DNA of 64,000 nt, taken from assembly GCA_907165135.1 (NCBI GenBank), contig OU015566.1, positions 12,834,001-12,898,000 on the forward strand, read 5' to 3'. Under the pieces are notes generated by a model. That model saw nothing but the letters and a program-made list of their open reading frames with translations. It was not told where the DNA came from and ran no database searches. Source of the DNA: Oikopleura dioica (taxonomy: Eukaryota; Animalia; Chordata). The first letter of the stretch is position 1; every line of letters starts with the position of its first letter. Both the position numbers and the translations under genes were made by a program. Of the stretch, positions 6,189-35,002 are shown one piece after another.

Positions 6189-6607
6189 CGAATAATAGCT
6201 ATTATGTCAGATGAAATTATTCTCAGCGCCTTTTTCCTTGGACATTATTTAGAAATTCGGTCTTGGCACAGGAGGTCGACTTGGGCACAGGCGGTTTAAA
6301 TCGTAATTTGGCAGTTGGCGGCTCCGCATAAGGGATATTGAGGTACTAAAGCAGTAAGTTTATGTAAGGTTAGGTTAACTATCGAACAAAGTCTGCTCGG
6401 ATACGAATAATATTAAAATCGAATGAATAATATATTTTTTGGGTACGACAGCAATTATTATAAAGGGTTCTATCGAGGTCAATTTCAAATATTTTCACAT
6501 GAACCTTTATTATAGAAAAGTCTACCGGGAAGTTGAATTTTCTATACATATGAATCTGGGAGCGATAATTCCAACTCAATTATAAACCTCCCAATTAATC
6601 AAAAATA

Positions 6608-9600: not shown

Positions 9601-9968
9601 TGAGTAATCATCGCTTGAAGATGGGCATTTTTCGAAATTTCGAAAAATTGACCAACTTTCAGCCTTACCGTGTGACCAACCGGTTGAAGTCCGCACCGGT
9701 TTCTCGACGGTCCGTACAAGTTCAGACTCTGAGCTATCCAATGAGGTATGATTCATCATGCTTACTCATCGATAACGATGAGTAATGGGCTGGTGAAAAT
9801 TTCCGATTTTCGAGTTTTCGAGTCGAAAAAATCGATTTTTTTTCTTTGCTTCACGTGGTTTTTTCTGGCGAAAGGGGGGTTTTAGGACCTCTAGAACACA
9901 TCTAGAGTATTGAGAAAACAAAAAAATAAGTTTGGAAATTTTGGTGAAAATTATATTTTTCTCGACCA
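6608..9968. mobile_element. Non-autonomous DNA transposon with ~550-bp terminal inverted repeats (Mutator/foldback-like)
   Basis: 6608-7160 is the reverse complement of ~9410-9968; near-identical mirror ORFs MVEKNII.. and MMNHTSLD.. appear in the track. A ~120-bp subterminal unit is tandemly repeated at 9285-9590. The flanks give only an imperfect AT-rich 9-mer (aaaaataat / aatattaat). The interior holds decayed coding fragments. Confidence 0.85.
8388..8846. mobile_element. hAT-type MITE nested in the long-TIR element
   Basis: TIR TAGGGCCGACGCGT / ACGCGTCGGCCCTA extends ~170 bp inward. Exact 8-bp TSD CTCATATC at 8380-8387 and 8847-8854. Removal restores a short reading frame (..THILSHI|YKLKDPTL..). 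Confidence 0.92.
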
Positions 9969-10002
9969 ATATTAATCAATAGGTATCGAACGTCTCATAG
10001 AA

Positions 10003-15009: not shown

Positions 15010-18000
15010 TTAATCGGAAGAAAGAGTGCTAAAAGAGCTTCTGGAAGTGTTGTATTCGGTGGTGTCAAGTGCTAGCAACAGCTCATAAAGCGGCAGTTGG
15101 AAAAGCGATGAGCTGACATCTAGTGTGTAGAGATTATCGCGAATCTTTATTGTGCAGTCTTTGGCTGCAAACATGGCCTTGATTTGCTCGACTTGGGCAG
15201 TGTTGAACATTGTGAAATCATCACCGAAGTCGAAGGTGATTGCCAGCTGCGGAGTTCGGCGCAGATTTGTTGGCAGGACTTTTATCGAACAGCCAGGAAT
15301 GTAGACGATTCCGCCCTGAATAGATGATAAATTCGACCCTCTGCTATCTGACTTACAGCATCGAGAAGCATGACTTTGTATGCTACGTTGAAGACATCGT
15401 GGGACATCTTCTCGAGGATCCTGCCCCGGTACCATATCTGCGATGAATGCAACTTGGCAGCTACGACGTCTCCTTTTTCAATCGATGGAGGCTTGTAGTC
15501 GTTATTTCGAGCAGCGAAATATGTCTCTTCCATATGATCTTGAAGAGCGAGGTACACTTCTTCTGTATGTTTGTGTCGAATGTGTACCTAGAAAGAGTTA
15601 ATTGCTTTACATAAAATCGCATCTAACCTGGGCTTGCCGAGAGTCGACGTAAAGCAAAATACAGTCGTTAACAATCGCTTCATTCGGAGCACTTGACCAG
15701 TGCGGTTGAACTAAAAATTCAAGGGTAGGGTTGATTATCATCAACTTATACTTACGAATTTTCTTAAGGTCCGCTCGAGGCTGGCAAGTATGCCAGAACG
15801 GCATCCCAATCAGATCTGTATCTTGGGACACTGGCTTCAAACTAAAACAGGAATTAAGACAGAAAATAGAAAACTAAGCTTACTGGAACCCATATTTCTT
15901 AAGATCGATTCTGAGAACAGGAAGCCCGTTTTTCTGACCCTCTACTTTGGCGATAACTCTATTGCGCTCGGTGCAAAATCTTCGAAGCTTCGCCCATTCA
16001 TATTCTTAAAAAAGTCAGCTCCGTAAAGAGGGAACTCTTTACCGTTAAAATGATCAGTATCGCAAAGCGTGACAGCGGAAGATTGTGCAGGAATCTTGAG
16101 CAACTCAGCCGATGGAATAATCATCGTCCCTCCAGACTTGATACTAAATCCATCGTCCACGCAAAAGAGAGCCTTCTTGGAGGCAGTCTGCACTCGACAG
16201 GGACCGTTTCGCGTGATAACAACACCGATGTGGTGAGGATTCTCGGGAGCTTCCTCTGCATTTTCCACGCAATTTGCGAGCGCGTCATCGAGGGCGCTGC
16301 GATCGTTGTTACACATGATATTCACCACCTAATTTGAACCGTTTACTATGCAAGAAATAATGGCTTTCTACCTTCTCTCCGTAGACTTCGGAAACACTAC
16401 ACATTGTGACGACGATTTCTTCTCCTTTTTTGAGAGTCTCAGACGCTATCCAACTTGTGAAGGTGAAAATTGGATCTTCAAACATCGGGTAAATGGGCGC
16501 TTCGTGACCAGCTCCAAAGCTTCCTACAACACAAATTATAAGCTTTCAAAGATTATTGAGCTTACTGAAGGATCCGATGAGCGACTCGGATAGGGAAAAT
16601 AGGTCGACAATTAGGATTTTCTTTCCGTTCATGACGGCAGTAGCGATGACTTTTGCGGAAAGATTGTTTGTTCCGTGCTTGACGACGAATTGCTTGAGGA
16701 TGTGGTCGACAAAATCTTCCTTGGCTTCGTCGTAGAAGCCATAGGTTGAGCTGAATATTATGAAGGGTCGATATTGTTGCTTTTCTTACCAATAAATAGC
16801 TTGAGCCGGGAACTTGATCACGAATGGCTTTGGCAGATGATGGACTAGATGCTCCGCCTGAATAAGTGACAAGGCGGTGTCAACGCAATGAACTTGGATC
16901 TGATGGCCATCATCAAGAACTCGCTCGACTTCTCCTCTCATGTAGCCGTCAGGAGTCATCGTCGCGACCGCGTCACCAACATTGAATTCTCGCAATGTAG
17001 GCATATCCAATGCACGAGCTTTGTAAGCTTCAAACTCGTCGTGGAAAGTATCGCGAAGACGGTAGTGCTCCTTTGTCTTTTTACGAATTGCAAAGGTTCG
17101 TGCGCATTGAGCTCTAATGACCTAAAGCAGGAATAAAAGTGGTTCTCATCGTTGATTTCACAAACCTGAACGTCCAAAAGAGCTCCCACTAAAATTGGCT
17201 CACTCGCATAAACAGATTTGCGTCCGGTAAAGTCCATTTCCATTCTCATTGTATCATTCAATAACTTTCCTTCTGAATAAATCTCCACTGAGAAAACTCC
17301 TTCTTCAATTTCGTCGATAAATTTGGCAGTGAATTCGCCTTCGCTCAATCTAGCGACAACTCTGAGCCGTTCCACGCGTAGATCAGGGTTAAGAAGCTTG
17401 CACGAAATCGTGCGCTTTCTCATTTCGACGAAGCGATCTTCAAGTTTGACCATTTGGTCCACATTGATTCTGCGCAGCTGATCTGAGTGGTCAAGAAGTT
17501 CTACTTCTGCGTTCTGGGACGTGATTTTTTCAACGACGCGGCATCGAACCCAGCCGAAGAATGGAATATTGGCGCCGACGATGAAGTTGTGTGCGTTGCC
17601 GGAAAGTGACGTCACAGAAGGAGCATTCTCACAAGCTTCGGACAGCTGCGACTTGAAGAGTTGAAACTCTTCGACCTCATCTTCCAAGTAGAGGAAGAAC
17701 TTGTCATCGATGGTATGATTTTCAATTTTTACCTGAAAACGTTGAATATAGTCTATATTATATAGAGTAGAGTAGGAATGTAAAATTACCTTCAACATCT
17801 GCTCGTTGCGGCTGAGCTCATCAACGTTCCTCTCTTGAGTTTTAATTTCCTGGTACTTGTTGAAAATCTCCGGCGAGATCTGATACTCGCAATACTTGTC
17901 AAAATCGCAAGTCCCTTCGTAGATCAAATTCTGCGCACATTGTTTCACCGCTATTATGTTTAGCGTTATGTATTTTCCGACCAACGCTTCAACATTTGAT

Positions 18001-18491
18001 GATCGATCACAAATCGGAATCTGCACGCTGACGAATAATGGCGGTATGTTCATCACCTCTCTTGGCAGTTCCGCCACGAATTCGTCAAGAAGAATTTCAC
18101 GACTTCCAAGATCCAAGTATCGGACTTCGTATTTGCAAGAGAACTCGTAGTTCAAGTCCCGAAATGGATAAACTTCTTCCACCACAGCTCTACACCAGCG
18201 TTTGCCCATCTTCGCAGCCACATAGTCGCCGACGAAGAATTCTTGAATGACGTTGTTTGTCGCGCCTAATTTCGTGTTTAGCGTCTCGTGGATGTCTTCG
18301 AACTCGTTTTGCTTCGATAGTGGAATTCCTTTGAGCAACACGGATCCCGTCTGTCTGCAAACTTCTTTCAGACAAATTTGCTGCTCGCCAAGACGAAGAC
18401 AGACGATCGTCTTTTTCGTCGGTAGCTCAATCATCGGATTCCCATTGTTGAGGATGTTGATCGTGTGTGGCTGGTTTGAGCAGCATGGGAG
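15010..18491 (-). CDS. Multi-Tudor domain protein, 3' portion (TDRD/tudor-like)
   Basis: Extended Tudor motifs include GDYVAAKMGKRWCRAVV..YEVRYLDLG, GWVRCRVV..VELLDH, GDAVAT..RGEV..VHCVDT and GDVVAAK..WYRGRI. The exon opens at a phase-0 acceptor (tttgtag, 18492-18493). Confidence 0.88.
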
Positions 18492-18709
18492 CTACAAAAC
18501 TTGATAAGGACTGCGTCAGAGACTGATATAATTTTCTCCGTGAATAGGCGCTGTTCTCAACCCTCTATATATATAAAAAATCACTCATTATAGGATACCT
18601 TTCATCTAATAAATGAATTTTATAGCTGAAAATATTCAAGCAAAAGCTGGTACGATATTAAAAAAAAGTAAATACGTGCTGAAAATCAAGAGAACCGACT
18701 CCAGTACTA

Positions 18710-20437
18710 ATGGAGCTTTGGCATCTAGGGAACTGTGCTCTTGCGACTGCTATAGATTGTCGCAATGCATTTGGAACTGTTCCCCACAGCTCTATTATTA
18801 GATTACTTGCTAAATTTGCAAGGGGAAGTGCGCTTCAGCTCCTAAGTGAATCACTTGGTAGGAATGTAAAAGTGGTACAAAGAGGCTTCCCATCCCAAGT
18901 CAATCCCCTCCTCCCCTATGGAATCCCCCAAGGGGGAATTCTTGCCCCTGTGATCTTCTCACTCTATGTCAGCCAACTAATGGACGTTCTAGGTGAACTT
19001 CCGGAGGGCACAAAGATGTCTATCTTCGCTGACGATCAACTTATTGTCATCACAGGAAGAAACCATGAAGAATTGGTTCTCAAAGCAAATATGGCACTGG
19101 ATGTTATCGTGGGGATGGTCTCGAAGCTTGGAATGTCATTAGTTGCGCGGAAAACTGTATGCTGTCTCTTTGGTAAGCAATACAAAGGTGCAACCCTGGC
19201 TGACCTTCCCAAAATAACCATAGATGGAACCCTTATACCATACTCAAAGAACATGAAATATCTGGGCTCATTCCTTGGGTCTAGGGATGGAGCCTTGAAC
19301 TTTGAATACAATAACCAAATATTACTCGGTAAATGTAGGGGTATAGTAAATAGGATCTTTGGCCTGTCTCAGTTTATTGTAAAAAAGGAAAATGCAGAGC
19401 TACTAAGAAGCTCCCTTCTTGGTACTATCCAACATAATTTCGCCTTCCTCCCCCTATGGAACAAGAATGAGTTCTGTAAATTCCAGAACATATTTCACAC
19501 GGGTCTAACCAATTCGCTAAGCAAGGCCTGGTGGATGACTCTGATCAATCGTAAAAATAATGAAGACTATGCCAAGATTAGATCGGATGAAATTGCGGAT
19601 GTCCTTGATAAGTATGGAATCATGTCGATGTACCAAATTAAACTGTCCCTTTTTGCGAAAAGTATATGGAAATGTCTAATTTGGAGGAGGAGTAATGCAC
19701 AGAGAAATCTCCTCTTCAATGCTATTAAATTTTTCTATGTGGACTCTGGTAGGCCGCTATGTAAGATACCAGACTTCCTAACGTTCTCCAGACTCAATAC
19801 AAAAATTAAACAAATGAATGAGATCTTTGGTGAAAATATCTCATTACTAGATGTTCACTATGATCTAACTGTTCTTAAGAAAGTCTTTGATAAACTACTT
19901 AGCACAAATCTCATAGAAATCAAACTAGTTAAACACAGGAACAGAAACTCAGCTGAGGCAAAAAAGTGTTGGCCCTGGTTCATGGAGCCACATTTTAATC
20001 AGCTCCCCCAAATAGTTAGAAACTCAATCCTTGATAAAAACTTTGATAATATCCTCTCTAGGGAACTTAAAAAGATGCACCCCCACCCTGAGCCCTCAAC
20101 ATCCTGCATAAACTGTAAATCTAATGTGGAAAAGATCCCGTTAAGTGTGAGAGCACAGACGGAACTTAGAACTGACTCGGAATTAATTAAATGGCTAAGA
20201 GGCTTTGAATTCAAAGAACAGCAAATAAGCAAGGAAGAGAACAAAATTCTAGGAACAATTAGGGAGGTGCTCTGGGATGAGATTGAGCATCAAAGTCCTA
20301 TTTCCGCTGCCCTTGGGGATTTTGCACTCATACTTATGAAAGGCTCTGCCCTCAGCTCTGACTTAGTCATTAATAAACTCCTAGAAATTACCAATGCAGA
20401 TCAGCTCCTCAGCCAAACCCCAACAATCTTTGATTAG
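18710..20437 (+). CDS. Non-LTR retrotransposon-type reverse transcriptase, 5'-truncated/degenerate
   Basis: RT3 AIDCRNAFGTVPH, RT4 GIPQGGILAPVIFSLYV, RT5 FADD and RT7 KYLG are present, with a downstream HxH..CxxC. No endonuclease domain lies upstream. Confidence 0.92.
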   Translation: MELWHLGNCALATAIDCRNAFGTVPHSSIIRLLAKFARGSALQLLSESLGRNVKVVQRGFPSQVNPLLPYGIPQGGILAPVIFSLYVSQLMDVLGELPEGTKMSIFADDQLIVITGRNHEELVLKANMALDVIVGMVSKLGMSLVARKTVCCLFGKQYKGATLADLPKITIDGTLIPYSKNMKYLGSFLGSRDGALNFEYNNQILLGKCRGIVNRIFGLSQFIVKKENAELLRSSLLGTIQHNFAFLPLWNKNEFCKFQNIFHTGLTNSLSKAWWMTLINRKNNEDYAKIRSDEIADVLDKYGIMSMYQIKLSLFAKSIWKCLIWRRSNAQRNLLFNAIKFFYVDSGRPLCKIPDFLTFSRLNTKIKQMNEIFGENISLLDVHYDLTVLKKVFDKLLSTNLIEIKLVKHRNRNSAEAKKCWPWFMEPHFNQLPQIVRNSILDKNFDNILSRELKKMHPHPEPSTSCINCKSNVEKIPLSVRAQTELRTDSELIKWLRGFEFKEQQISKEENKILGTIREVLWDEIEHQSPISAALGDFALILMKGSALSSDLVINKLLEITNADQLLSQTPTIFD

Positions 20438-20488
20438 AATTTTGACGTTTTCCTAGGTGCGGTATGCTCTGAAACCATCCTTGAAGCA

Positions 20489-21403
20489 GTGGACAACCTC
20501 AGAGACCCTCACACCATTGATAGGCTACTGCTAATTGAAGTGGACAGCAGATCCATCTACTTTGTCAATGAACTCATGGAAAAAACAGGAACTTGGTTGA
20601 CCCTCCAAGCCTCTTTCAAAATTATCCCAAGCTCGATTGGTAAACTCCTTGAGCCTGAGCGATGGAACAATTACCATGATGAAATTGAAGAGCTTGGGAA
20701 AGGAATCCTGAATCTCTTTGGAGAAGAGCACTGGAAACAATTCAGAAAAATGCTTAGCGAGACGCCTAAGAATGACGATCCTTGGTCCTGGATTCTGCCA
20801 AAGGAATGCTCTCTCCTTCCCACTGCGCTCTGGCTAGTTAAACATATTCAAGCGAAAAACGCTCTGGACGACCTTCATGGCAATGAAACCTGGTTTCCGC
20901 TCAACATTGGAGCAAGTGAAAATCTATGTATCTACGAACCAGCACCTAGCCCGTCTCTCGCTCCTGAAATTCAGTTGAAACTTGGATCCGAGCTGATAAT
21001 CCAACTGAATGCTCTCATGGCAAAGGGTGGTCGTTTTTCCATGGACAGCTGGGGCAATAAAAAGCTTCATATACCGCGCAGAATTGGCAGCTTCCTTGGC
21101 TGTCTCACCCTCAAAGTCCTTCACTACAAGAAGATCTCTGAGCTTGATGACTCCTTGCAATCTGAACTTGTCAAGATGGCTGAGCATAGAAACAAAGGCT
21201 ACATCTCGTCAAGAGGACAGTTCTGCAATGACATCATTGCACACAGGAACACGTTGGATCTGCTTATTAGCAATGGGCTCTACTCAAACTGCCAAGCACT
21301 TCTTAACAACATCTTTGCAGCTCTTGTAACCCCAGCAGGGCCGCCAGAGCTTGTCTGTGAAATCTGCAACGTCATGAAATTAGTCAAAACTAATTCTCCC
21401 TAA
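20489..21403 (+). CDS. Island ORF2, orphan; same frame as RT and separated from it by a single TAG
   Basis: Frame is open from 20438 to 21403; C-terminal CEIC; no recognised domain. Confidence 0.65.
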   Translation: MDNLRDPHTIDRLLLIEVDSRSIYFVNELMEKTGTWLTLQASFKIIPSSIGKLLEPERWNNYHDEIEELGKGILNLFGEEHWKQFRKMLSETPKNDDPWSWILPKECSLLPTALWLVKHIQAKNALDDLHGNETWFPLNIGASENLCIYEPAPSPSLAPEIQLKLGSELIIQLNALMAKGGRFSMDSWGNKKLHIPRRIGSFLGCLTLKVLHYKKISELDDSLQSELVKMAEHRNKGYISSRGQFCNDIIAHRNTLDLLISNGLYSNCQALLNNIFAALVTPAGPPELVCEICNVMKLVKTNSP

Positions 21404-21542
21404 CCCCTATCTAAATGACACTGTATACACATGAGTTTAATGATTCTCCCTGCCAGTAATATATGATCTGGGTTTTTTAGACCAGAATAGACAATCCCTG
21501 GATTAACAATCTTTTTTTCCTAGATAAGCCTGGAATCGGAGT

Positions 21543-23306
21543 ATGAAGATTTACAAAGGATGGAATGCAAATGCCATGGATCGCCCAGCCGCCACAAACA
21601 AGGCCACAAAGCTTGGATTCTGGCTTTCCAACACGGCAGCGACCATTGTCCAACCAAACCTTCATGCAGCCTTGGCTGCCATCAATGAAAAGCTTAGCAA
21701 AATCCGCCTAGCAGCGGGTCCCCTGGGACTTGACTACCATGTTTCGCACCCCAAGGCTGGTATTATCTTCCAACTCAAAGTGGGAGACTGGATAGAAGAA
21801 GCGATCAATGATGACATTCCCCCGGCGCTGGTTGACTCGTTAGCGATAGTCACAGAGCAGTTCGAGACAATTTATTTTCTCAGTTCCACAGCAGTGCTTA
21901 TGGGAGCGCTTGATGACATAGTACCGCCGAGAGCAAATGCTGGGGATGACCCGGGGAAGATGCTGATCCCTTCTGGAATCTACCTTGCTGAGGAGCTAAT
22001 CAATGATCAGAATCTTACCACACAATCTATGGAAGAAGAAATCAATGATAGCAACTCAATAATACTGAGCATTCTCAAGAACTCTGGAAGAGATGCGGTT
22101 AAGTCCTGGTTCTCCAAATACAATGCAGGCCCCATTCCTTTTGAGGCTGATGAACTGCTTGCTGAATGGTTCAAACCTGAACCCCTGAATTGCACGGACC
22201 TCAGAGCTATCGTCCAAGCCATAACCAAGTCGAACGTATGTCTGCTTGATGGACCCTTCAAAAGACCAGCTGGTGCACCAATCTGGTCTGTGCCAACTGG
22301 ACTAACACTGCCTCATATTCTTCACCACCCCTCCCCCTTGGTAGCCCCAAACCAGGATATCCTTGACGTAGCCGTACAATCCAACTCTCTGACTAAACTA
22401 ACGACCAAGGTTACCAACCCAATGCTTCTTTCTCCTCTTCTCCTCTCGTACTACACCTCAAATCGGCATGTATTGGAACTTGGACTCATTGCCAGTGAGG
22501 ACTATGTGAATACAGTTGGCAGATTGCTTAAAATCAAAGCTGGACTGATTCATGCAAAACTTAAAGCATGCCTGGTGTTTAACCGGTTTATCCGAAACTG
22601 TGGTGAACCTCTCAGTGGAGCCATCCCGACTGGAAAAGCTCTGGACACAATAACAGAGTCAATGCTAAAAAGACCGGCAAATGAACTCAGAATCGCAAGG
22701 CAGAACTGTGTATCAAATGATGCAATGTTCCTGAAGCCCAAGAGACTTGCCATTGCACTAGCGCAAAACAACATCACGAGAACCACCTGGGAAGAAGTGC
22801 TCATGGAAGTCTATGGAGCCAACCCTGCTATCATTGACCAAGTCAAAGCTCAGCTTCGCACGGAGCACTACCCCTGCTTTGAAGAATGGTTCACTAAGAA
22901 GCTAACCCTGGAGAAGTGGGAACCTGGTGAAGCACAGATACTGAAGCACGACATCAATGGAGCCCTCTTCCAGTTACTAACGGAATCCAATGAAGTATGG
23001 GCGACCAATGACCTGCTGGAAAGGGCAATTCTCAGAATCACGGGAGCCTCAGGCATAGCGGCAAGTGTTACTGAGGAAATAACTCTTCTAGCGGAGAGAA
23101 GGCGTGGATCCGCTAGATCCATCAACCCTCCCGAACTCTCACTAATTCCTGGTTCATCCAACATGGACAGTGACCCTGATGAATCCGACAATGGCAAAAC
23201 GCCTCCTCCAAAGAAACGCAAGATCAACCCCTGCTCGGCGGGAAAGACACCAATGAAGCTAAACCAATACCAGGATTCTGAAGAAGATGATGATGACCCC
23301 CGCTAA
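21543..23306 (+). CDS. Island ORF3, 587-aa orphan with C-terminal NLS-like PPPKKRK and acidic tail
   Basis: Intronless ORF; the ATG lies 19 nt after a ttttttcctag acceptor. Confidence 0.8.
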   Translation: MKIYKGWNANAMDRPAATNKATKLGFWLSNTAATIVQPNLHAALAAINEKLSKIRLAAGPLGLDYHVSHPKAGIIFQLKVGDWIEEAINDDIPPALVDSLAIVTEQFETIYFLSSTAVLMGALDDIVPPRANAGDDPGKMLIPSGIYLAEELINDQNLTTQSMEEEINDSNSIILSILKNSGRDAVKSWFSKYNAGPIPFEADELLAEWFKPEPLNCTDLRAIVQAITKSNVCLLDGPFKRPAGAPIWSVPTGLTLPHILHHPSPLVAPNQDILDVAVQSNSLTKLTTKVTNPMLLSPLLLSYYTSNRHVLELGLIASEDYVNTVGRLLKIKAGLIHAKLKACLVFNRFIRNCGEPLSGAIPTGKALDTITESMLKRPANELRIARQNCVSNDAMFLKPKRLAIALAQNNITRTTWEEVLMEVYGANPAIIDQVKAQLRTEHYPCFEEWFTKKLTLEKWEPGEAQILKHDINGALFQLLTESNEVWATNDLLERAILRITGASGIAASVTEEITLLAERRRGSARSINPPELSLIPGSSNMDSDPDESDNGKTPPPKKRKINPCSAGKTPMKLNQYQDSEEDDDDPR

Positions 23307-23819
23307 TCTCTGACACTGCTGCAGGCGACTCCAATCCAATTGGATAATTTTCCCTCATTGCCTAAACCATTAAAACAATGTCTACTCCTGCTCCTGCTCT
23401 CTCAGCTAACTATTTCTCAAACAACTCTAAACTCTATGACTCTTTCCCTTCATGGCTCCCTTGCCTCAGCTATGAATTCAGAAGTACTAGAGAACTCCTT
23501 GAACTAGAAAAACTCAGTTAATATCAATTACCCTACTCTCTCAGACTCTCTTATCTGCTCAGAAGCAGAAAATTCACCATAGTACTGCTCTCTGTACATC
23601 GGCTACCCAGTCAGTTTCAATCTCTCCCCTCGATCTTCCCTGCTACCTTGAAACTGGAAAACTCCCTGCAACAATACCAGTGAAGTTGCACTGCCAACCC
23701 AGTCCTTAGAAAATCACAACTCTGATGCTTGTACTTTTTGCAATGCGCCAATAGCTAAAGCCCAATAAATAGACTGCCCGAGAATAATCACTTTCTTCCT
23801 AGAACTTGAACTGCTTGGA

Positions 23820-25718
23820 ATGTCCTGGAATGGCTATACTTCCTGGACGAGCTCTGCTGAACGGCCGGAAGCAAAGGCCTTTCTCCGCTCTGTTCTGTAC
23901 GGGATCTACATGGATGATGTCGATGACCTGTTAAGAAGCCTAACGAATCTCCAGCGTCAAGACGAAGACACTCTCTGTGACCTGGGATTGCATCGGATCT
24001 CCATGCGTAGTAGAGCTGCATTGATCTACAGAATTGACGTGAAGTCCTGGTGGGCGGAAGCCATCTGTGCGAACATCCCGCCTCAGCTGGTCCCGCAATA
24101 TGCTGTTGTCAACCCAGCGGCAGGTTCCCTTAATCTGCATAGCGAATGGTCCCTCCGCTGTGGAAGTCTGAGCACCCAACTGGAAATCGATCAACATCTC
24201 TGTCTAATTCCTTCGGGGATTCATGGCAAGCTATATCGAGCTGCTGAGGAAACCTTCAGCTTTGACAGGAAACCCTTTGATGACTTCATTGCTGAGCTCC
24301 AAACACTAGTTAACCCTGAGAGATTGGAAAACTATCTTAGATCTCACGTGGGGCTAGTAAATACCAACGTAGCTGGGCTCAATGCTTTAATGGCTCCACA
24401 GGAGATGGATGCCGATGGACTCAGTGAGATTGTCAGAACTTGCAGGCTCCGAAGGAAGAACGTGTCTGAGAAGTTCAAACTCTGCTTTGGTCCTTGGCAT
24501 GGCGTTAAATCACATGCTCCCTTGCTCGGAGTAAAACCCACTGTCCTTCCCTCTCTGACGTTCCCTGACTTTAAACTTGTTGCCAAATCATCAAAGTACA
24601 GTGGAAGCATCAAGATCCCCAACCCTGAAATATTCTCCACTGCTAATCTAGCGATGTTGTCGACTGCTAGAAGCACACTGGAAGTGGCAGCCAAAGCCAA
24701 GAACCTGCTTTGCACACTTATCAGCAATGACCTGAGCAAAAAAGCACAGGCAACTCAGTGTGCTATTGAACTGGGCTTAGCTATGAAAAGAGCCACACAC
24801 CTCCAGATTGACCCTGCTCGTGAAATTGACGAAGCTATCCACAAAAGTGCCAGCTCTATCAACACCCAGTTCAAAACCAAAGTTGCAATTGTCGGTAGCA
24901 TGGTCTCTAGCATTGTCGAGTCTGCTGACAACGCACTCCTGAAACCGGAAATGATACTCTGGAAGAAAATCACAGATGAAGACTTCCCGGCCTTCCCGTG
25001 GACCAACTTCCTCAGGGTCAATCTTGGCATCCCAACCACTGTGATCACGGAACTGGAGGCTGAAATCAAGCGACGAACAAACTACAGTCTGGAACTCTTC
25101 GTTGACAAGGTCCTTGGAACCATTACATGGATGCATGGTGACTTTGACTTCTTTTCTCAGGAAAGAGCCTGGTATGGCTCCACGATCAAGGCTATTCCTC
25201 ACCAAGTACGCAATGCAGAAATAATCTCTACTCTGATCTCAACTGTTACTGGGAACTTGGTCCAAGCCAGAGATGCTGCCTACTTCCTAACCACAGAATG
25301 GAAGCCCTGCAGGACCAATGATCAAACGCACACCTATGATCCTTCCCCGAGAAAGCGCCCAAGAAACACGCTGGATGAAGTGGAGCCTTTCTCATCTAAG
25401 TCCATCTCTCCAGTGGGTAACGCCACTACTCCAGCTACCTTGACACGACAAGAAGGCGCGCTCACAAATTCTAAGGAATACGAACGACTGGGGAATCTTT
25501 CAGAGAATCAACAAGGAGTGAACCTGTCAACTCTGAGTGCAGAAAGTGCTGAAACATCCAAGTACACCTGCTCGCTCAATAATACAAGCAGCTCTGATGG
25601 ACTTGGTGATGTGCAACCCAAGCAAAACCCAACTAAAAGAAACTCTGCCAATCTCATCAGCCTTGTCAACCACCAGAGTGATGAAGAAATCGAAGATGGT
25701 CAAATCTGTGGAGAATAA
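23820..25718 (+). CDS. Island ORF4, 632-aa orphan, distant paralog of ORF3, with NLS-like PSPRKRPR
   Basis: Intronless ORF preceded by AATAAA (23764) and a tttcttcctag acceptor (23802); shares an ungapped 48-aa block with ORF3. Confidence 0.8.
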   Translation: MSWNGYTSWTSSAERPEAKAFLRSVLYGIYMDDVDDLLRSLTNLQRQDEDTLCDLGLHRISMRSRAALIYRIDVKSWWAEAICANIPPQLVPQYAVVNPAAGSLNLHSEWSLRCGSLSTQLEIDQHLCLIPSGIHGKLYRAAEETFSFDRKPFDDFIAELQTLVNPERLENYLRSHVGLVNTNVAGLNALMAPQEMDADGLSEIVRTCRLRRKNVSEKFKLCFGPWHGVKSHAPLLGVKPTVLPSLTFPDFKLVAKSSKYSGSIKIPNPEIFSTANLAMLSTARSTLEVAAKAKNLLCTLISNDLSKKAQATQCAIELGLAMKRATHLQIDPAREIDEAIHKSASSINTQFKTKVAIVGSMVSSIVESADNALLKPEMILWKKITDEDFPAFPWTNFLRVNLGIPTTVITELEAEIKRRTNYSLELFVDKVLGTITWMHGDFDFFSQERAWYGSTIKAIPHQVRNAEIISTLISTVTGNLVQARDAAYFLTTEWKPCRTNDQTHTYDPSPRKRPRNTLDEVEPFSSKSISPVGNATTPATLTRQEGALTNSKEYERLGNLSENQQGVNLSTLSAESAETSKYTCSLNNTSSSDGLGDVQPKQNPTKRNSANLISLVNHQSDEEIEDGQICGE

Positions 25719-26090
25719 CTGCTTACTCTTACTTAAATCTATGATCCCTTAATCCACCAAGAATTACCCATTTCACTGCCAGCTAGGGATTCTGGCTAAT
25801 AGCTTTTCCGTTCAACATGGGCTGTTACCTCTGCTCTCTTTGGGACCCTTTCTTACTAAGCTACTGTTGTGCTTGCTCTCCTAGATAAACTTTGCTTTAA
25901 CCAACATCCCAGATAGGTAAATTGCACTGCGATGAATAAATTATTAAACTCTACTCTTTTTTGGTAGAACAGCGATATCAGAGCTGTTGACAACTTTGAC
26001 TTTTATATCTATGCAGCATGTTACTTTATTGCAGAAGCACTCAATAGTATGCCACAGAATAAATAAATCATATATCATTGCCATGCACAA

Positions 26091-29000
26091 TTACAAGAAC
26101 TCTTTGCAAGCAAATTCGCGGGTTGAGTACCGCTTCCAAGAAACATCGCCTCGCTTGCCTCGGTAGGCCGTAGAAGTCATGTGGCCGTAATCCAGGATTG
26201 GAGATGAGTTCTCAGCGGAAGGATTGACCAATGTAGGTTCCTCGTGCATAAACACCAACTGCCCCACAGAGTTTATACGCCCAATCAACTCTGAGGGAGG
26301 GACCGGGTCGTTGCTGGGGGCATCGCGCTCTGAAAATTAGCTTGCTCCGTGAATTGAATATTCTTAACTTACGGAGGAACTGCTTAACTAAGGGGCCCTC
26401 CTTTGTTCCCTCAGGCCAGAATAATCTCTCATCGTTGTATACCCCGAAGAGCAAACGTTCGATCTGCTGCTCCCAGCGAGGACCCACAACTCGCTGAACA
26501 AGGGAGATGTTGCGACGCCAAACTGGGTTGATCAAGCCTGCACTGTACTTCAATGAAGTAAAGGCCTCTGAGCGGATGTCGCCGTGTCTCTTCTCAGCAC
26601 AATATGCCAAATATCGATCGCGCAGTGGTTTCTGATGTTGAGCTATGAATCCTGCTATTCCTTGCATACACATGAGCTAAATAGTATTAACTTAGACTTC
26701 CACTGACTAAACCGACCTCTTCTCTACGCATTGTTGTTCCGCATGTCAAGCGAGCCAAGTCCCCTAGACCACGCTCCCCCCGCTCTTCGACGAACTCGTA
26801 GCTGAAGCCAGGCCAGATTGTTCTAAAATTACTATTAAAATTTGTCCAAGGAACTGCTATTCTTACTTTTCCCAGCGAAGTAACTTTCCATCTGAGTTGT
26901 AAACTGGGTGCCAATCATAATCGTGGCCCGGATTAGACTCCTGAGGTAAGGTCATGGAACCAGGAGGGGCTCCAATGCTAGTATCCGGGACTAACACTGT
27001 CTCTGTCATCGACTGCTTCTCTTGCTCGCGACGTTGTTTGTATTTCTCCAAAGTCAGACCCATAGATTCAGCTGCTCGGAGTCCTTTTCGCTCGACTGCT
27101 CCACAAAGGAAAAGAATTCCCATGCGACCGGACATCTTCATAGACCAATAAGAATTAGGTCGTTCAGCTCCAATTGACATTGCAAAATCCATGCAACATC
27201 TCCCAGGGCAAAATGCATCGTAAACTCGGCGCTTTTCACCATCCAAGTTTTCATTCCAGAATCGGGCCATAGTGGACAGAGTCCCAACTATGGACAAAGT
27301 GAAGTCCTCAATGTTCTGACCATGGGAGTCGGCATGGGCTATCTTACGCAACCAAGGACGATTGGAATACTCAGGAACATCGGTGGGCTCAAATGAAATC
27401 ATGGGATAGATCTTCAAAGCGCAGATTGACCCATTGAAAAAATCACCGTCGCTATCCTGGCAAGGGACATCATTGCATAGTCTGTCAATGTCTTTCCCAG
27501 TCAACTTAGTGCGCTCTTCTTCACTCATCTCTGGATAACCCTTGCTGTGATCATGCCATGGAGCCACGGGCTGGCAAACATCGCGGATTATAGCCTGCAG
27601 AGTTCCCTCTGGGGTGTAAAATGTACCATGATGCTGTCGAATGTATCTCTCCTTGATGCGCTGGAAATCCCCTGGATTGATGTCGTCCGCCCGCATTGGA
27701 GTCGTATAGATAGCAAAGGTGGTTGTAGATAACTGCTCCTCGCTTGTACTCCGATGCTGAGGAACTCCATTCTCAGGATATGAACCATCGGCATGACCAT
27801 CAAAGGGCAATACATAATCTGGGAGGACAGTAAAGCCCTTAGTAGTGTGCTCGTCGTCCAGATTACGATGAAGCTCAACCCTCTCTCTGGCGAGCCGAGA
27901 AAAGTTCTCAGGCTGTTCGTTCATCACATCGATGAAGTCTTCGTTGTCTAGGAGCTCTTCTGTTGGAAGAACGCTTGTTGCATAGTATGGACCCTCTCGG
28001 AAATTAACAAGATCCACACCGTCCTCCTCTGGGTTCTCTTCCTCCTCCGGAATTGCCACTTCTGTGACTATCTCACGGGTCTGCTTCTTGGGGAATGGTG
28101 GAACTGTTTCCTCCTGGATGCTCTCTGCGGATGGGGGATCCATGTTGTCCCATGCGGCTACCTCAGCCTGGGTAAGATTCTCGGATTGTCTTGGGAGAGT
28201 CTCGCGCCGCAAGAGTGACACTTCCTCGTCAGAAATGTCGTGGTGAACATACATGGCCGGCCCAGTAAGGGTTGCAGGTTTCCCGGGTTCGACGGTGACA
28301 TAGGCGCTTCGACGTTCAAAATCCTGGAGTAAACGTGTAGCTTGGAAATCGGGCTGACCCTGAAGTGACATGGCATCGAAATAATTCTTGGCGTCAGCCT
28401 CCTGCAGAGTCTCCCCAGGCTTGAGAGTTGATGTATCAATGAGTAGGTGAACAGGGTGATCTGGAGGCAACTCGTTCAAGTCGCCGACCACGGGGCAGTT
28501 ACATGGACCACTCTGCATACAGGTCAAACAGGGTAGAACATGACTTCCTAGATTTTCGCCCAGGTAAACCAAAGTATCAATGCAGGGGCAGATGGATCGC
28601 TCTGATCCAAAAAGGTAGTCGGAAGCAAATCCCTCGAAGTCACCCTGATCGGAGATGGTATCGGTAGACAGGGGTGACCATTTGGGCAAAAAATTATCGT
28701 CGGGCCAACCAATTGCCCGCCCAATACCAAAAATCAAGACCCGGGCCCACCAAATGCCCGACCAGTCCAATGTGCCCAGAATGCCCAATCGGGCGATTGG
28801 GCAATTTTTCGGGCAAAAATTTTCCCGGCATTTCAGGCTTCTTAAAACTTTACTTTTTTACTTTTCTTTTAATAATTTGTTTCAGTTGAAGTGATTGAAC
28901 GAATTTTAAGCAAAAAAAGGCTCTTGAAAGGTTTGAAAAATATTTAAAAGGGGTCGAAAAAATAATTATGTAAAAGTTCAGTCCGGTTGTCAAGAATAGA

Positions 29001-31573
29001 CAGCTAACCATAAAGGTCCACTTCACACACTCTTGCATAACCGTCTCGAACAAGGGGTTCAAAAATAAGGGATAAAAAGGATCTGGAGGTCAAGGGTAGA
29101 GTCTACCGTAGACAGCTAACCTTCAAGGTGCACTTCACAGACCCTTGCAGAACCATCTCCGCAAAAAAGTCGAGTTAACGGGGTGGATATTTTCATAAAA
29201 GGATCAGGAGGTCAAAGGTAGACAGCTAACCATTGAGGTCCACTTCACACACCCTTGCAGAACCTTCTCCTTATATCTTTTTTTTCTTTGCGAGCTTAAC
29301 GACCAATAAGCGGGCAGGAAAACGCCCACGTTCGTGATTTTCCCCGGTGGGCATTTGCCCAGCTGCCCAATGGTGCCCAACTGCCCAGAAAATGCCCAAA
29401 TGCCCGACGTATCCCATGTTGCCCAGCCTATTTTCAGGAATTGAGCCGACCAAATACCCGCCCAAAAGCGTTTTTGCCCGAAAATTGCCCGATTTGCCCA
29501 AATGCTCAATGCCCAAATGGTCACCCCTGTCGGTAGATGAGTTGTATGAGCTGCCCTCCTCGCTACCTTCTTGGCAACGGGGTCTACTGCGACACTGAAG
29601 ACAGCCATTGTAGATCTCTGTAAACTGCACAACTGGGCAATGGCGAAACTCTGTTATTGGGCGCCCCTTCTCATCTTGGCTCTCGTAAACGTGGAAGTCC
29701 CATGGATTTGGCTCGTGAGAATTGCGAACTTGTTCCCGTACTTCTAAGTATCTTCGTAAGCACTGACATTGACGATCCAATATTTTGAAAGAGCCAGCGC
29801 AATCGTTACATCCAAATACGCGCTCATTATTCTTTGCCATCACTGACCACATGATACTCAAAGGATTTCTCAGGAATACAAAACCGAGATCCCACATCTC
29901 CTTGATGAGTGCGCTGAAATCTTCCCCCTCCTGTGTTCTTTTGCGTAGAAGACGAGTCTTCATTTGTGACAAAGTATAGGCAAGATCTTGTTCAGCATTG
30001 CTCTGCTCGGCGCTGGGGACCCCGAGCTGTTGGGCCTGCTCAGATACAGCGCGAAGACGTGCCATCTGATCTCGCATATCCCAAACGTAATCCTTCATAG
30101 CAGTGATTCGACGCTCGAGATCCCCTGCAACGCGGCACTCCAGGAACGATCTCAGAATCTTGCGCTGTGTTTCTGGTACATTCTGTACCTCGTCAACCAT
30201 GGATTCGTGGGCCAAACGGAGCTTCTCGACCTTCTGTGCAATGAGCATCTTCCGGGCGTTAAGATTTTCTCGGTTGGTTGACTGTGATTGAGTAGACTCC
30301 TTGTGCTGTCGTAATGATGCTGCAGTTGGAAAATACTCAGATGAGCGACCAGGTACCCTCTTGTAAACGTTTCCAGCGGTTTTAAGACCATGAGTTTCTG
30401 AAGTTAGAGCATACTCGCCAACTTTGAGTTTGAGCTCTCGCTCAGTTCCAATGAACACACACGTTCCTATGCATCTCCCTCCACGGATAAACTCCAGGAT
30501 GAAAGTTTTCCGCTCATTCTTCGGTAAGATCGTCAATCTCTGGCAGGAAATCGAGAGATCCTCTGGAGTCAGTAGATTCTTTGAATACGGAAGATCTTCC
30601 CTGGTACACCCTAATCCAGCTCTGATGCCCTCCCGATCGCGGAACTTAGGAAATGCGAAGCCAAATCGACTGAGTTTCAGTAGTACATCTTGGCAGCGGA
30701 AGAATCGCTCACCAGCGTTGTGTTCTCTGTTGGACGGTCCAATTGCTCCTAGAAAGCCGACATAAGCCTCTCCATCCTCGGCGTGATTTCCACCATGAAT
30801 GACCAAGAGGTCTCCTCTGAACTTTGAAGAACCCGGATTCAGTGACTCCAACACGGAATCGATACAAAGCTGCAAGTACTTTCGATCCCTGGCCTTCCAC
30901 TCGGTCTACAAAAAGTGTTATCCCTGACCAAGTAACTAACTCTAATACCTTGAATAAATCCATTATCCAGCGGCTTCTCCCATTCAATGAATGTCTCAGG
31001 GAGATGTCAGCCTCAATGCCGGATGACTCGGCCAGACGATAAAATCGATACCATGACGAGGGAATTCCCACGCGGATCCAATTATTTTCCCGGTTCCTCC
31101 GTGACTCGGCGTTCTTGAAGAAGATATGCTGAGCGGATGGACCAAAGCTCTTCTTGAGCACTTTGCTTTGATAGTTTGGCTCATCTACAAGGGGCTCCAC
31201 CATCTTAAATTCCTCGTCGGTATCAAGATATGGTGGATTCTCTGGGCTTGGAGGTCGACTGCTGAGTGCACTATGTAAGGAATTAAAAATCGTATTCAAT
31301 GTAAAATTGTTGTCTACTATGTATAAATGGAACATCTACTTACGAAGCCTGATCCTCCAAGAGAACACACATCTGGAGGGAATGAGCCTTCCACTGCTGT
31401 GCCTTGACCGCGTCGGACACTGTTGGATCCTGCACAGGACACAAATCCTGGTAATTTTCATGGTCCAGCGAAGAAACTTGCTCAGTTATCTCCTGCAAAT
31501 AGTCCTTGCTTTTCACCAGCGATCGATATCCTGAGGTATAACGAGAATACTGCGGTTTGCCGATGCCTGACAT
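26091..31573 (-). CDS. Island antisense gene: 6 exons, ~1,456 aa after removing a MITE; Cys/His clusters and coiled coil, unknown function
   Basis: Exons 31573-31344, 31270-30949, 30905-26867 (minus the MITE), 26822-26717, 26676-26373 and 26329-26091. Five GT-AG introns (73, 43, 44, 40, 43 nt) all have compatible phases. Confidence 0.78.
28669..29529. mobile_element. hAT-type MITE inserted in exon 3 of the island antisense gene
   Basis: Perfect 20-bp TIR CAGGGGTGACCATTTGGGCA; exact 8-bp TSD TCGGTAGA at 28661-28668 and 29530-29537; subterminal TGCCC/GGGCA arrays. Confidence 0.95.
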
Positions 31574-31967
31574 GTCCTGGATCTGCTAGCTCTGAGAATG
31601 GTCACAGATCTCCCTCATCACAAAACTTGTCAATAATGGTGTAAATTTAAATTCTCATAGAATCTCAAATACTCCTAAGATCACTACCTAGTAATAACTT
31701 ACTCTTTGTCAACTAACCCTCTCCTGATCTGTGTTAAAGATGAACTGACCCTCTAAGGAATTTTCCCCCCACAATAACAATTGTTCTAGAGACACTCTGT
31801 CACTAGGACCTGAAATTAACTTGGCCCTCCTGGATGGAAGCCTAGAAACTCCTTCACTTCTCAGGTGTGATCAACTATCCAACAACAAACTGCTCTAGAA
31901 AGGCCCAAATAACAACCAAGATTCAACATGTTGCTAATTTTTCCTTGCAAATCTCTCTGTCTCCCTA

Positions 31968-32171
31968 ATGGCTATTCAGGAGTTTATCTTTTTCTCCGCA
32001 CTATGGATGATTATTTTATACTTTGTTTTTATCCTTTATTATTATTTTTCAAGTGTCAAGAAGGCTGAGGAATGGTGCAGTGACAGCGGGAATGTGACGG
32101 TCATGGTGGTGAAGCGGTCTTCAAGTCTCCTGGTGTGGCGATTCGTACTTCACTTCGGTGGTCCAGGATGA
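31968..32171 (+). CDS. Small single-pass membrane protein candidate (67 aa)
   Basis: Hydrophobic FIFFSALWMIILYFVFILYYYF is followed by KK; the stop overlaps the next ATG (ATGA). Confidence 0.45.
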   Translation: MAIQEFIFFSALWMIILYFVFILYYYFSSVKKAEEWCSDSGNVTVMVVKRSSSLLVWRFVLHFGGPG

Positions 32172-32353
32172 AGACGGCAGTAATACCTCCTAAAGACTCT
32201 GTCATTAATATTTACTGTAATTATATTCCCTGCTGCTCCCCACTGTACCTTCTATTACTCACTGTACTCAGCCTTCCTGCGCTTATAGGGCAAAGGATTA
32301 GGTCTTTTCCTTTTGCTCCTGTGCCTCTGGCGATCATTGATTGTCCAGGATAA
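32168..32353 (+). CDS. Second small hydrophobic ORF (61 aa from ATG 32168)
   Basis: MKTAV..CCSPLYLLLLTVLSLPALIG..; ATGA overlap at the start and TAATG overlap at the end. Confidence 0.35.
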   Translation: MKTAVIPPKDSVINIYCNYIPCCSPLYLLLLTVLSLPALIGQRIRSFPFAPVPLAIIDCPG

Positions 32354-32558
32354 TGCCCGAAAGGGGGCCCAATAAATGTAAACAGAACAGAACCGTGATT
32401 GACGTAGTTAAAGAAAGATCTGCTGTCGAGGAAGATAGTGTCCAGGAAATAAAGACAGATCCAGTTTCGGTTACAATAATATTTAAAGTTTAATGCACTC
32501 TAAATCCATGTAACCATTAAAAGTCGACGATCTTGTTGCGAAAATTGAAAAACTGAAA

Positions 32559-33150
32559 TTGAACTCAAAAAGATGCGATGAGAATACCCTTGCTCTCAAT
32601 GAAATTCATGATTCAATGATTACTTCTCTTGAAGCCTACAAAAATATGGAAGAAACTTTTAAGAAGCACCAAGCAAATTCTTTCGTTTCTGAAGAAAAGC
32701 TGCAAGAAAAAACAAGCGTTCACATTTTGACGTTAAAAAATATAGAAGCAACGCAAAATTTTTGTGATTCAATGTTATCAATGATTGCCCGGTCAAGAAT
32801 CAAAATTGCCGCTCTAAAGACTGAAAAGGAGACTACCAAAGAGGAGATCAAAAATATTCGTCGAAAGACGCAACCAGTGCTTTCCAAGTTAACCGACGAC
32901 GAAGATGACGAAACTACAAACGATTGCGATATCTGCTTTGAAAAATTCAATCACAGCGATCATTGGCATTCATGCATTACTGTGTGCGGTCATCGATTTG
33001 GAAGCTCTTGCATAAAGGCGGTTGAAAATTTTCACAAGTAAAATTTTTAATCAAAAATTGAACCGTTCAAAGAAACAATTCGAAATCAATGCTAGGTGCC
33101 CCAAATGCGATCGCCATTTCACCGAAGAGAACATTTTGACTCTGTTCTAG
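32559..33150 (+). CDS. Coiled-coil + RING finger protein (RFWD3-like RING pattern); start uncertain, possibly 32353
   Basis: CDIC..CGHRFGSSCI, then a short intron, then RCPKC; stop TAG at 33148-33150. Confidence 0.75.
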
Positions 33151-33161
33151 CTATTTCCTAC

Positions 33162-35002
33162 CTTGAGAACTTCCATGCCCACAACACGCTCATCCTGTTG
33201 AATCTCCATTAACTCTCTCGTAATTCCACCATCATGACTTCTGTAGTCACCGCTCATTTTGCGAAGCAAGGTGCAGCGAATCGCTTGTTTTGGCAGTTGT
33301 TTGAATTCTGGGGGCAAGTAAAAGAGATTTTCGCTGGGATCGAGTCTCGAAATAATAATTCTTGTTCCGCTATCTAGAAGATGAACGACTGTTCTTTCGC
33401 TGTAGACGCCTAGAATTTCCGCTCGATACGCGTACTTTCTCTGGTCTTTCTCCCAAAGTGCCACACACGCTCGACCAGCAGTTATGTCTTCGTCTCTCAT
33501 GGCCTCCAAATTTGCCTGGGTTAGTTTTTCATTCAGGGAAGAAAGTTGTTCTTCGAATTCAGTTAGAATCGCGTAAACACCATTTCCATTTTCGCTATAT
33601 TCGTCGACGTTTTCAATCTTTACATCGTAAAGGACCCCAGGCGAGACTTGAACTGTTTCCATCTTTTCTGACTCGTCACTCGAAGCGGTAGAATATCCAC
33701 AGTCATGTACATTCCACATATACTCGGAGATCAATTCCTCACACAAGTTGTTCCCGTCAAAAAACAGGTCTGTTCGAGTAGGATCTTTAGTAGATGGCAC
33801 AGATTCGAAGATTCGCCTTTCTGCTACTTCGTCACCTTCAACTGCGTAGTGAGCGAAATCGTAAAAGTCAGCCTTTGCTTGCTTCACAATTTTCTGGGCA
33901 AAGGGGCAAGCCATTTTTGCGCATCGAACTCGAGATTTCAACCCTTGCAGAGCGTATTTCTTCACCATCGGAGGATGAACCTTGACAATGTCGCTGATTT
34001 GAGTGATTTCGTAAATTTGAGTGAAGGGAATTCGCTCTCGTCGTCCATAATCGACCAGTTGAACAACTACGCAGCCTTCGTCAACTTGTTTCTCGACGTA
34101 AAGAATGTGCCCGCGGGCGAGTATCCGATCATCGTCGCGGTTGGCAAAGGATTGTTTGTCGAACTGATAATATGGGCTGATATGTTTACTGTAAACGAGA
34201 CAGAGGACACCGCGGCGGATTGATTTCTTGTGCAATGGCTTGATTTTCGAAGTATAGTGCTCGTGGTTGATGATGTATTCTAGCAGCCTCGCGTCGCCCT
34301 CCGAAGAAACCGGAACGACCCAGAAGCTGAGGGGCGATTCAATGTGCCAGATGCGGACATTTTCTGGCTTTCTTTCTCCGTTTGTTGGGGCGTATTTCGC
34401 GACTTTATACGTGAACAGTGTTCGCAAGACATCCTGACATTCGCCTACATAAAGGTCGATATTTCTCGGCCCTTCGCTTCGCCGAACAGTGATGTCTTCA
34501 ATTAAGACAGTGTGGTGCAACAGTGTGCCAAGCGCGTCCATTGCGATTTCGCACCAGAGCTCGTTCGACTGAGGAGGCTTGATTCCCTTGAGCTGGAAGC
34601 ATTTTGCGGCGCCGAGGAGGTTTTCGTCGTCCGTGACGATTAGATCCGCGTAGGACTTGGTCGTTTGGCCGCCAGTGTCGATGAAGAGAAGGCGAGCGTA
34701 GTTCATGTGGGTCCGGTCGACGAGCTCCAGAACGCGGCAGCGGTACCAGTAGCCATCTTCGGGGTCAAGTGAGAGGTAGATTTTGTCCGGAGAGATGGCG
34801 TTCAAAGAAGGCGATGTTCCTTCAAGTATTGCTTCTCTATTGGAAGGAATGGAGTATTCTGAGCGCTCCTTCAGCGCAGAATTCCCCCAGACCTGGAGAA
34901 ACCCATCTAAATTCAACACTAAGACCAGGAAAATACAACAAGTCGCTTACCAGAAGTGAGATGAACAGCAGTTACGAGAATCTGCTCTGTTGGGCCACTC
35001 AT
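33162..35002 (-). CDS. Multi-Tudor domain protein, 5' portion
   Basis: ATG at 35002 lies 8 nt after a tttttag acceptor, followed by a 44-nt intron. Three Tudor motifs follow (WYRCRV..LFIDTG; ARGHI..LVDYG; YRAEI..LLDSG). The exon ends at a phase-0 donor AAG|gtagga at 33161. Confidence 0.88.

Follow-up and report, generated by a model that had tools for sequence, protein, structure and literature searches.

We analyzed a 64,000-nucleotide (nt) stretch of the Oikopleura dioica genome (hereafter, the window), which exact look-ups placed on chromosome record OU015566.1 (chr1, positions 12,834,001 to 12,898,000) of the OKI2018_I69 assembly, GCA_907165135.1. A 13.7-kb stretch of the window, from about 18.69 to 32.39 kb, is with high probability one 5'-truncated insertion of a giant retroelement of the type that lacks long terminal repeats (non-LTR) and carries an apurinic/apyrimidinic (APE)-type endonuclease (EN). 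The element probably belongs to the Odin lineage, and complete copies measure 18-21 kb. Downstream of its reverse transcriptase (RT), the window copy holds three extra coding regions on the same strand and a large intron-containing gene on the opposite strand. This array recurs as a unit: its ends are common to the copies, its flanks differ, and its parts show joint divergence under purifying selection. The preliminary description of this locus had proposed a cargo-bearing giant retroelement. Our analysis supports that proposal with three corrections: the copy is truncated at its 5' side, the first of the extra coding regions is probably a spliced exon, and the proposed target-site duplication (TSD) is unsupported.

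The recurrence of the array carries most of the argument. We found the same gene order at seven other loci in Norwegian and Okinawan O. dioica, and in a marine metagenome contig. The order comprises an open reading frame (ORF) that we call ORF1, an APE-EN/RT frame, an ORF2-like region of about 305 amino acids (aa), one or two proteins of about 600 aa (ORF3/4), a convergent spliced gene of about 1,400 aa, a 3' block, an AATAAA signal and a tail. EN-RT frames with homologs of ORF2, ORF3/4 and the antisense gene downstream of them are present at the loci labeled L006, L010, L004, L007 and L008 and in JGI contig 3300072015, and partly at L003 and L005. The 18.7-kb JGI contig carries EN, RT, a 304-aa ORF and a 612-aa ORF, then minus-strand fragments. 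By tblastn, the window ORFs are fully collinear with L006 and L004. The RT is 44% identical to L006 and 39% to L004 at the amino acid level (30% to L005 and 29% to L003), and the ORF2-like region is 26% identical to L006 (E 6e-23) and 27% to L004. For both loci, the corresponding values are 22-24% for ORF3 and ORF4 and 27-41% for the antisense exons. L006 has both ORF3 and ORF4. L010, a further copy on the same Norwegian scaffold, shows the same order and is 64% identical to L006 in EN-RT, 53% in ORF2, 35% in ORF3, 40% in ORF4 and 45% in the antisense gene. Host neighbors differ from locus to locus and include ARID, astacin, p450/SH3BP5 and Tudor genes. Dispersed copies with the same ORF order, common ends and different flanks had been set beforehand as the test of the retroelement proposal, and such copies were found.

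We examined the RT remnant in the window. An open frame on the + strand (18683-20437, stop to stop) retains the C-terminal portion of the RT domain together with the thumb/C-terminal region, and it carries an HxH...CxxC motif whose H/H/C/C columns are invariant across the aligned RT copies. The ORF at 18710-20437 matched Pfam RVT_1 with an E value of 4.8e-15. Because this match covers only profile positions 62-202 and begins at residue 4 of the ORF, the RT must be truncated at the 5' end. ORF1, the endonuclease and the RT N-terminus are all absent from the window copy. The L003 RT matched RVT_1 at E 3e-27, and the best solved-structure matches of an RT profile were R2 RTs (E 1e-7). These matches bear out the earlier assignment of a non-LTR-type RT. 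A search of PDB sequences with one single EN-RT sequence returned no match.

The full copies place both EN and RT Pfam domains in one ORF of about 1,700-1,850 aa, downstream of an ORF1 of 700-970 aa. An APE (Exo_endo_phos) endonuclease was identified in the full relatives L003, L005 and L006 and in the JGI contig. The RT had been described as coming first in the array; this arrangement is an effect of truncation, as full copies carry ORF1 and EN upstream. In all five full copies examined, the EN-RT frame begins before the end of ORF1 and is in the -1 frame (L006 3036-3063, L004 3435-3471, L005 2714-2768, L003 12802-12811 and L007 1230-1269). The overlap suggests programmed -1 frameshifting or coupled translation. 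ORF1 gave no credible Pfam match at E values up to 10. We also considered a relationship between ORF1 and ORF3/4, and profile-profile comparison found none.

The right end of the element is conserved among related copies. The 3' terminal block with its AATAAA and (AACAG)2 tail lies at 32270-32392 on the + strand, with AATAAA at 32371-32376 and (AACAG)2 at 32381-32390. Nucleotide alignment matches the last ~120 nt of the window element to the 3' ends of L006 and L010, both Norwegian copies. All three have conserved blocks, AATAAA and an (AACAG)/(AAACAG) tail in common, and their flanks diverge directly after the tail. This DNA-level conservation indicates that the AATAAA-(AACAG) end, which had been recognized earlier in the window alone, is more than a chance feature. 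RNAalifold predicted stem-loops in the 3' block from an alignment of three sequences with few compensatory changes. Other subfamilies end differently: L007 and L008 have another 3' block in common and then diverge, and L004 ends in AATAAA and an ACATAC-type tail. Two marine metagenome sequences, L012 (3069-3213) and L024 (reverse strand), contain only the last 146 nt of an L006-type end with the (AACAG) tail, at 92% identity and in an unrelated flank. This stub is either an extreme 5' truncation or a SINE-like (short interspersed element-like) non-autonomous rider on the same 3' end. A metagenome scan with a 17-mer of the 3' block gave 17 hits, of which 15 were matches by chance. Between the antisense gene and the conserved block, the 3' untranslated region (UTR; 31574-32269, + strand) is not conserved. 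We found no ORF or sequence common to the copies in this interval and no Rfam match, and the small hydrophobic ORFs reported at the right end are not conserved between copies. Read on the opposite strand, the same interval lies upstream of the antisense gene and forms its promoter region.

Evidence for insertion of the array as a whole comes from L004. This full element of 18,040 bp is flanked on both sides by a 1,177-bp duplication of host DNA (L009 8303-9479 and L004 18771-19947) whose two copies are 99.75% identical. The duplication starts exactly at the L004 tail and ends exactly at the 5' end of the element, and only ~520 nt precede ORF1 inside the bracketed unit. One insertion of the entire array would leave this geometry. 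For the window copy, a left boundary at 18544 had been proposed together with a CCGTGA TSD (18538-18543 and 32393-32398, + strand). This boundary was not confirmed: detectable homology to full-length copies starts at about 18728, inside the ORF that begins at 18683. The 7-mer AGAACCG (18691 and 32389) is an equally good TSD candidate, and matches of at least 7 nt arose in 23% of shuffles, so no TSD is supported at the window copy and CCGTGA is no better than chance. The search at L006 gave an 8-mer only.

We compared the rates and patterns of divergence across the modules. The RT tree separates the window, L004, L006 and L010 (clade A) from L003, L005 and L007 (clade B) with a support of 100 on both sides. 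The ORF3/4 tree shows the same split and groups the window ORF4 with ORF4 of L006 and L010 (support 92). Selection was measured on the L007/L008 pair, not on the window copy. These two copies have different flanks and are 76-88% identical at the nucleotide level. The ratio of nonsynonymous to synonymous substitution rates (dN/dS) is 0.05 for EN-RT, 0.16 for the ORF2-like region, 0.10 for the ORF3-like gene and 0.03-0.14 for the antisense exons, with a dS of 0.9-1.3 in every module. The agreeing trees, low dN/dS and similar dS therefore indicate that the accessory genes travelled with the RT and were kept by selection during propagation.

Three open + strand frames had been reported downstream of the RT, and all three are present, at 20489-21403, 21543-23306 and 23820-25718. 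The first, the ORF2-like region, spans 304 aa from a GTG start (20489-21403, table 11) or 321 aa stop to stop from 20438, and its homology to other copies starts upstream of any ATG. We found a GGTAAG motif in the RT codons F-G-K of the window (19172-19177, + strand), which is a candidate phase-1 splice donor with an intron that would start at 19173. Five of six aligned copies spell these codons TT(Y) GGT AAG, an agreement with a joint probability of 5e-6 under the codon usage of the individual ORFs. An in-phase AG acceptor occurs where ORF2-like homology starts, at one common position in the alignment, in the window (20455-20456), L006, L010, L004, L007 and L005. L003 has neither the donor motif nor an ORF2-like ORF. 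The public gene model g3516 (P0003; 379 aa, 18980-21403, + strand) uses the exact junction of this donor and acceptor. Because the donor and the in-phase acceptor are conserved, the ORF2-like region (20457-21403 as a candidate exon, ~305 aa) probably serves as a 3' exon that splicing joins in frame to the N-terminal portion of EN-RT, and not as a gene in its own right. The window RT ORF and the ORF2-like region lie in one reading frame, separated by a single TAG (20435-20437) and no tail. The two regions also have the same frame in L004 and the JGI contig and different frames in L006, L010 and L007.

ORF3 (587 aa, 21543-23306) and ORF4 (632 aa, 23820-25718) lie on the + strand and are distant paralogs with 25% identity (E 5e-6); both coincide with public gene models. 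Orthologs of ORF3 follow the RT in L004, L006 and L010. A comparison by hhalign links the N-terminal ~75 residues of the ORF2-like protein to residues ~76-158 of ORF3/4 (86%, E 5.6e-6), and the three sense accessory regions therefore form one family. ORF3 alone matched only itself in a word-index protein search. A combined ORF3 and ORF4 profile, run against 1.84 billion representative proteins, recovered 12 relatives, all from O. dioica (Norwegian assemblies) or marine metagenomes. Each relative is encoded directly downstream of an EN-RT ORF homologous to the window RT, and most are then followed by a large convergent gene. The C-termini of both proteins have a basic patch followed by an acidic tail, and the basic patches look like nuclear localization signals. 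Pyrimidine-rich AG sites precede the ORF3 and ORF4 ATGs by 1-40 nt in most copies. The accessory ORFs and their relatives gave nothing credible against Pfam at E values up to 10, and ORF3/4 profiles matched no PDB sequence. An AlphaFold2 (AF2) model of ORF3 was moderately confident (pLDDT 67.7, pTM 0.72), and Foldseek found no match to it below E 0.1 in PDB or BFVD. Our best guess is that the accessory proteins most likely act in the ribonucleoprotein (RNP) of the element or in its control.

The convergent gene lies on the - strand at 26091-31573, where a public model predicts a 1406-aa protein. It had been described as a 6-exon gene. A convergent spliced gene is indeed present, and it has at least seven exons. 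A per-junction scan gave approximate borders for the exon ORFs, at 31573-31344, ~31270-30880, ~30870-29460, ~28840-26867 and ~26670-26373, with a micro-exon near 26820-26725 and the gene end at 26091. The exons align in order with those of L006, L004 and L010 (26-41% identity). A donor GT after W(E/Y)(K/Q), in phase 2, occupies the same codon phase in the window, L006, L004, L007 and L008, and is followed by the micro-exon with its W.GF motif. By our reading of the alignments, a second intron, after a conserved FL, is probably common to the copies as well. The largest intron contains three ~110-nt tandem repeats (a minisatellite, 28982-29269), and L006 has an uninterrupted ORF where the window has these repeats and the intron. 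Searched exon by exon, the protein matched nothing in Pfam and, by profile, nothing in PDB; its AF2 model was unusable (pLDDT 33), and its family is confined to O. dioica and metagenomes. The preliminary description had pointed to intronless sense ORFs beside an intron-retaining antisense gene. An intron with conserved phase in five copies upholds this observation, and intronless sense ORFs with retained antisense introns are what copying through a sense RNA predicts.

We propose the following model for the element. A complete copy begins with a 5' UTR, ORF1 and the overlapping -1 frame EN-RT, followed by the ORF2-like region and one or two ORF3/4 paralogs. Its 3' modules comprise a convergent gene of ~1,300-1,480 aa, which has spliceosomal introns and an upstream region of its own, then a 3' block specific to the subfamily, AATAAA and a short tandem-repeat tail. 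A full-length sense RNA would be copied by target-primed reverse transcription, starting from its 3' block and tail on a nicked target, and the antisense introns would survive because they cannot be spliced from sense RNA. Splicing from the donor inside the RT would express the ORF2-like region as an EN/partial-RT/ORF2 fusion isoform, in the manner of retroviral alternative splicing. ORF3 and ORF4 may be released by cis-splicing or spliced-leader (SL) trans-splicing at the pyrimidine-rich AG acceptors. For the window copy, reverse transcription would have stopped inside the RT region, leaving an insertion that presumably cannot move by itself and whose accessory ORFs are still open.

Several observations weigh against this interpretation. 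The full-length template RNA and every splice are deduced from DNA, and the sense RNA would have to bypass internal AATAAA signals. The window copy has no statistically supported TSD, and its 5' junction falls somewhere in ~18545-18728. At L004, a 1.18-kb duplication is unusually long for a TSD of a long interspersed nuclear element (LINE), and an artefact of that assembly, the second Norwegian one (GCA_000209555.1), is possible. The copies are few and very divergent (22-64% aa identity), with no near-identical pair that would mark very recent movement. We found no antisense-gene homolog in the DNA examined for L003 and L005 of clade B, and the L007/L008 antisense gene resembles that of clade A only in one short stretch (E 1e-5). 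Finally, the accessory proteins match no known function, family or fold in Pfam, in PDB profile searches or, for ORF3, by Foldseek.

We weighed three other explanations. The RT could be an unrelated dead LINE fragment beside lineage-specific host orphan genes. Public annotation does treat g3516 and its neighbors as ordinary genes, the accessory ORFs are intact despite the truncated RT, and ORF3 had no other relative in the word-index search. An unrelated fragment would not account for the recurrence, at seven other loci with other flanks, of this RT lineage ahead of homologs of these genes in unchanged order, and the differing flanks also disfavor segmental duplication of one host locus. Since the conserved 3' terminal block lies past the antisense gene, the trees agree and dS is equal across modules, we regard this explanation as exceedingly improbable. 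A composite origin deserves slightly more weight and is still very unlikely. According to this explanation, ORF2-4 and the antisense gene belonged to a second mobile or virus-derived element into which a site-specific LINE inserted. No LINE resembles the 3' module, its proteins have no Pfam, PDB or fold match, and L003 and L005 may lack the antisense gene, all of which would suit such an origin. The junction between the supposed partners argues otherwise: no tail, poly(A) or repeat lies between the RT stop and the ORF2-like region, and the conserved RT donor would splice in frame across this junction. The truncated RT of the window abuts host DNA directly (Tudor gene start at 18434), and the short leader ahead of ORF1 in the bracketed L004 unit likewise disfavors a composite. 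The sole tail-bearing 3' end follows the antisense gene, and its last 146 nt have been mobilized alone.

The third alternative accepts the element as described and holds that the window copy is an exapted remnant, whose accessory genes are now kept by host use. About 2,900 accessory codons are all open in a copy that cannot move by itself, and we found no second copy of this subfamily among the annotated OKI proteins. A recent insertion would look identical, and the selection that we measured acted between other copies. We consider exaptation unlikely.

We compared the element to known systems. Canonical LINEs such as L1, CR1, Jockey and I-like elements are 4-7 kb long and have two ORFs and a short 3' UTR. 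In canonical APE-type LINEs, ORF1 is followed by an overlapping EN-RT ORF, the APE domain is N-terminal to the RT, and a Cys/His motif lies at the C-terminus. They also show 5' truncation and have no terminal repeats, and those LINEs in which the RT recognizes its own 3' end have a 3' block and simple-repeat tail. The element described here resembles them in these respects, with ORF1 and the endonuclease present in full relatives and lost from the window copy by truncation, and we classify it as LINE-type because of its APE endonuclease and non-LTR RT, upstream ORF1, 5' truncation and tailed 3' end. It departs from the compact two-ORF layout, as ~12 kb with three sense coding regions and the antisense gene separate the RT stop from the 3' end. 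Unlike canonical LINEs, it has two or three paralogous sense regions and a spliced antisense gene of ~1,400 codons after the RT, and its EN-RT has an N-terminal extension of ~700 aa and a conserved internal splice donor. This large cargo sets the element apart within the family; compactness is usual and not strictly defining, and the element is still filed as a variant LINE.

Odin is reported to be a non-LTR lineage exclusive to Oikopleura (Volff et al. 2004, as cited in PMC4122922 and PMC8008620). According to PMC4122922, it is the sole non-LTR lineage reported in O. dioica, and for this reason we consider that the EN-RT elements described here are probably Odin by RT. This assignment follows the report on the host. 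The same host and divergent, low-copy lineages are common to Odin, as far as it is described there, and to our elements. LINE/Odin was reported to be almost absent from the OKI assembly (PMC8008620). The accessible Odin literature mentions neither a size of 18-21 kb nor accessory ORFs nor an antisense gene; earlier Odin work may already have noted extra ORFs.

Three other groups of elements resemble the array in part. Terminons, the giant Penelope-like (Athena) elements of bdelloid rotifers, also carry many accessory ORFs downstream of the RT, are frequently 5'-truncated and have a specific 3'-terminal fold (PMC6431247). They differ in having a Penelope-like RT without APE, telomere attachment and a hammerhead ribozyme motif at the end (PMC6431247). 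Unlike Terminons, our element combines APE with a non-LTR RT, is interstitial, ends in an (AACAG)n tail, has no Rfam match and carries a spliced antisense gene. Complex retroviruses, such as HTLV-1 with its HBZ gene, have a sense RNA genome, an antisense gene transcribed from a separate promoter at the 3' end, and alternative splicing to accessory acceptors. Unlike these viruses, the element has no LTRs, integrase, protease or env, and it would use target-primed reverse transcription, as opposed to cytoplasmic reverse transcription and integration. The Tor Ty3/gypsy elements live in the same host and have an extra third gene (env) with its own mRNA (PMC4402516). Tor elements are LTR elements with gag, pol and env (PMC4402516), and their RT type, ends and accessory proteins show no relation to ours.

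No giant non-LTR element appears in a review of giant transposons of eukaryotes (PMC6431247). We lean, by a little, toward the view that a LINE lineage has independently arrived at retrovirus-like complexity and that, at 18-21 kb, it is the largest and most gene-rich non-LTR retrotransposon known. Its distinguishing features would be the -1 overlap, the RT-internal splice fusion, two or three accessory paralogs of apparently new fold, and an antisense gene of ~1,400 codons inherited via sense RNA. In the accessible literature and public annotations, these features have gone unrecognized as those of a complex LINE. LINEs are regarded as minimal two-gene elements, and here LINE-type machinery carries ~12 kb of extra genes under purifying selection. 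Target-primed retrotransposition could thus support large multi-gene units with complex expression, and the element offers a natural example of how an antisense gene with introns can pass through an RNA intermediate. At least four "genes" annotated in O. dioica OKI, together with several unnamed Norwegian proteins, in fact belong to a mobile element. In this species, whose genome is known to be scrambled, such misannotation affects counts of genes, work on orphan genes and analyses of synteny. The accessory proteins form a new family without known folds and provide an entry point to the requirements of a LINE in the most compact genome of any animal.

The window element sits between two Tudor-domain genes and beside a small RING-finger gene. 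The left neighbor is a public Tudor gene model on the - strand (15010-18434). The RING-finger gene (~32572-33150, + strand) adjoins the element on the right and is followed by the second Tudor gene (33147-34919, - strand). A public 621-aa Tudor model (32121-35002) crosses the RING gene into the 3' UTR of the element and is probably an annotation artefact. A repeat search of the window found no LTRs, terminal inverted repeats (TIRs) or flanking direct repeats around the element, Pfam searches found no integrase, protease or RNase H domains in any ORF, and no Rfam family, hammerheads included, was detected at E <= 0.1 across 18400-32600.

Other repeats occur elsewhere in the window. A 566-nt inverted repeat (6604-7169 and 9408-9973) has arms that are 96% complementary and 2.2 kb apart, with a 126-nt tandem duplication at one arm (also 9284-9535); the pair looks like a TIR or foldback-type element of ~3.4 kb. 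Nested inverted repeats with GC-rich units of ~39 nt, at 45406-45565 and 47623-47805 and again at 54483-55550, may be foldback-like. A 39-nt tandem repeat with GCTG/GGTTG-rich units is present in at least five copies at 40503-40764 and is probably a repetitive coding stretch on the other strand.

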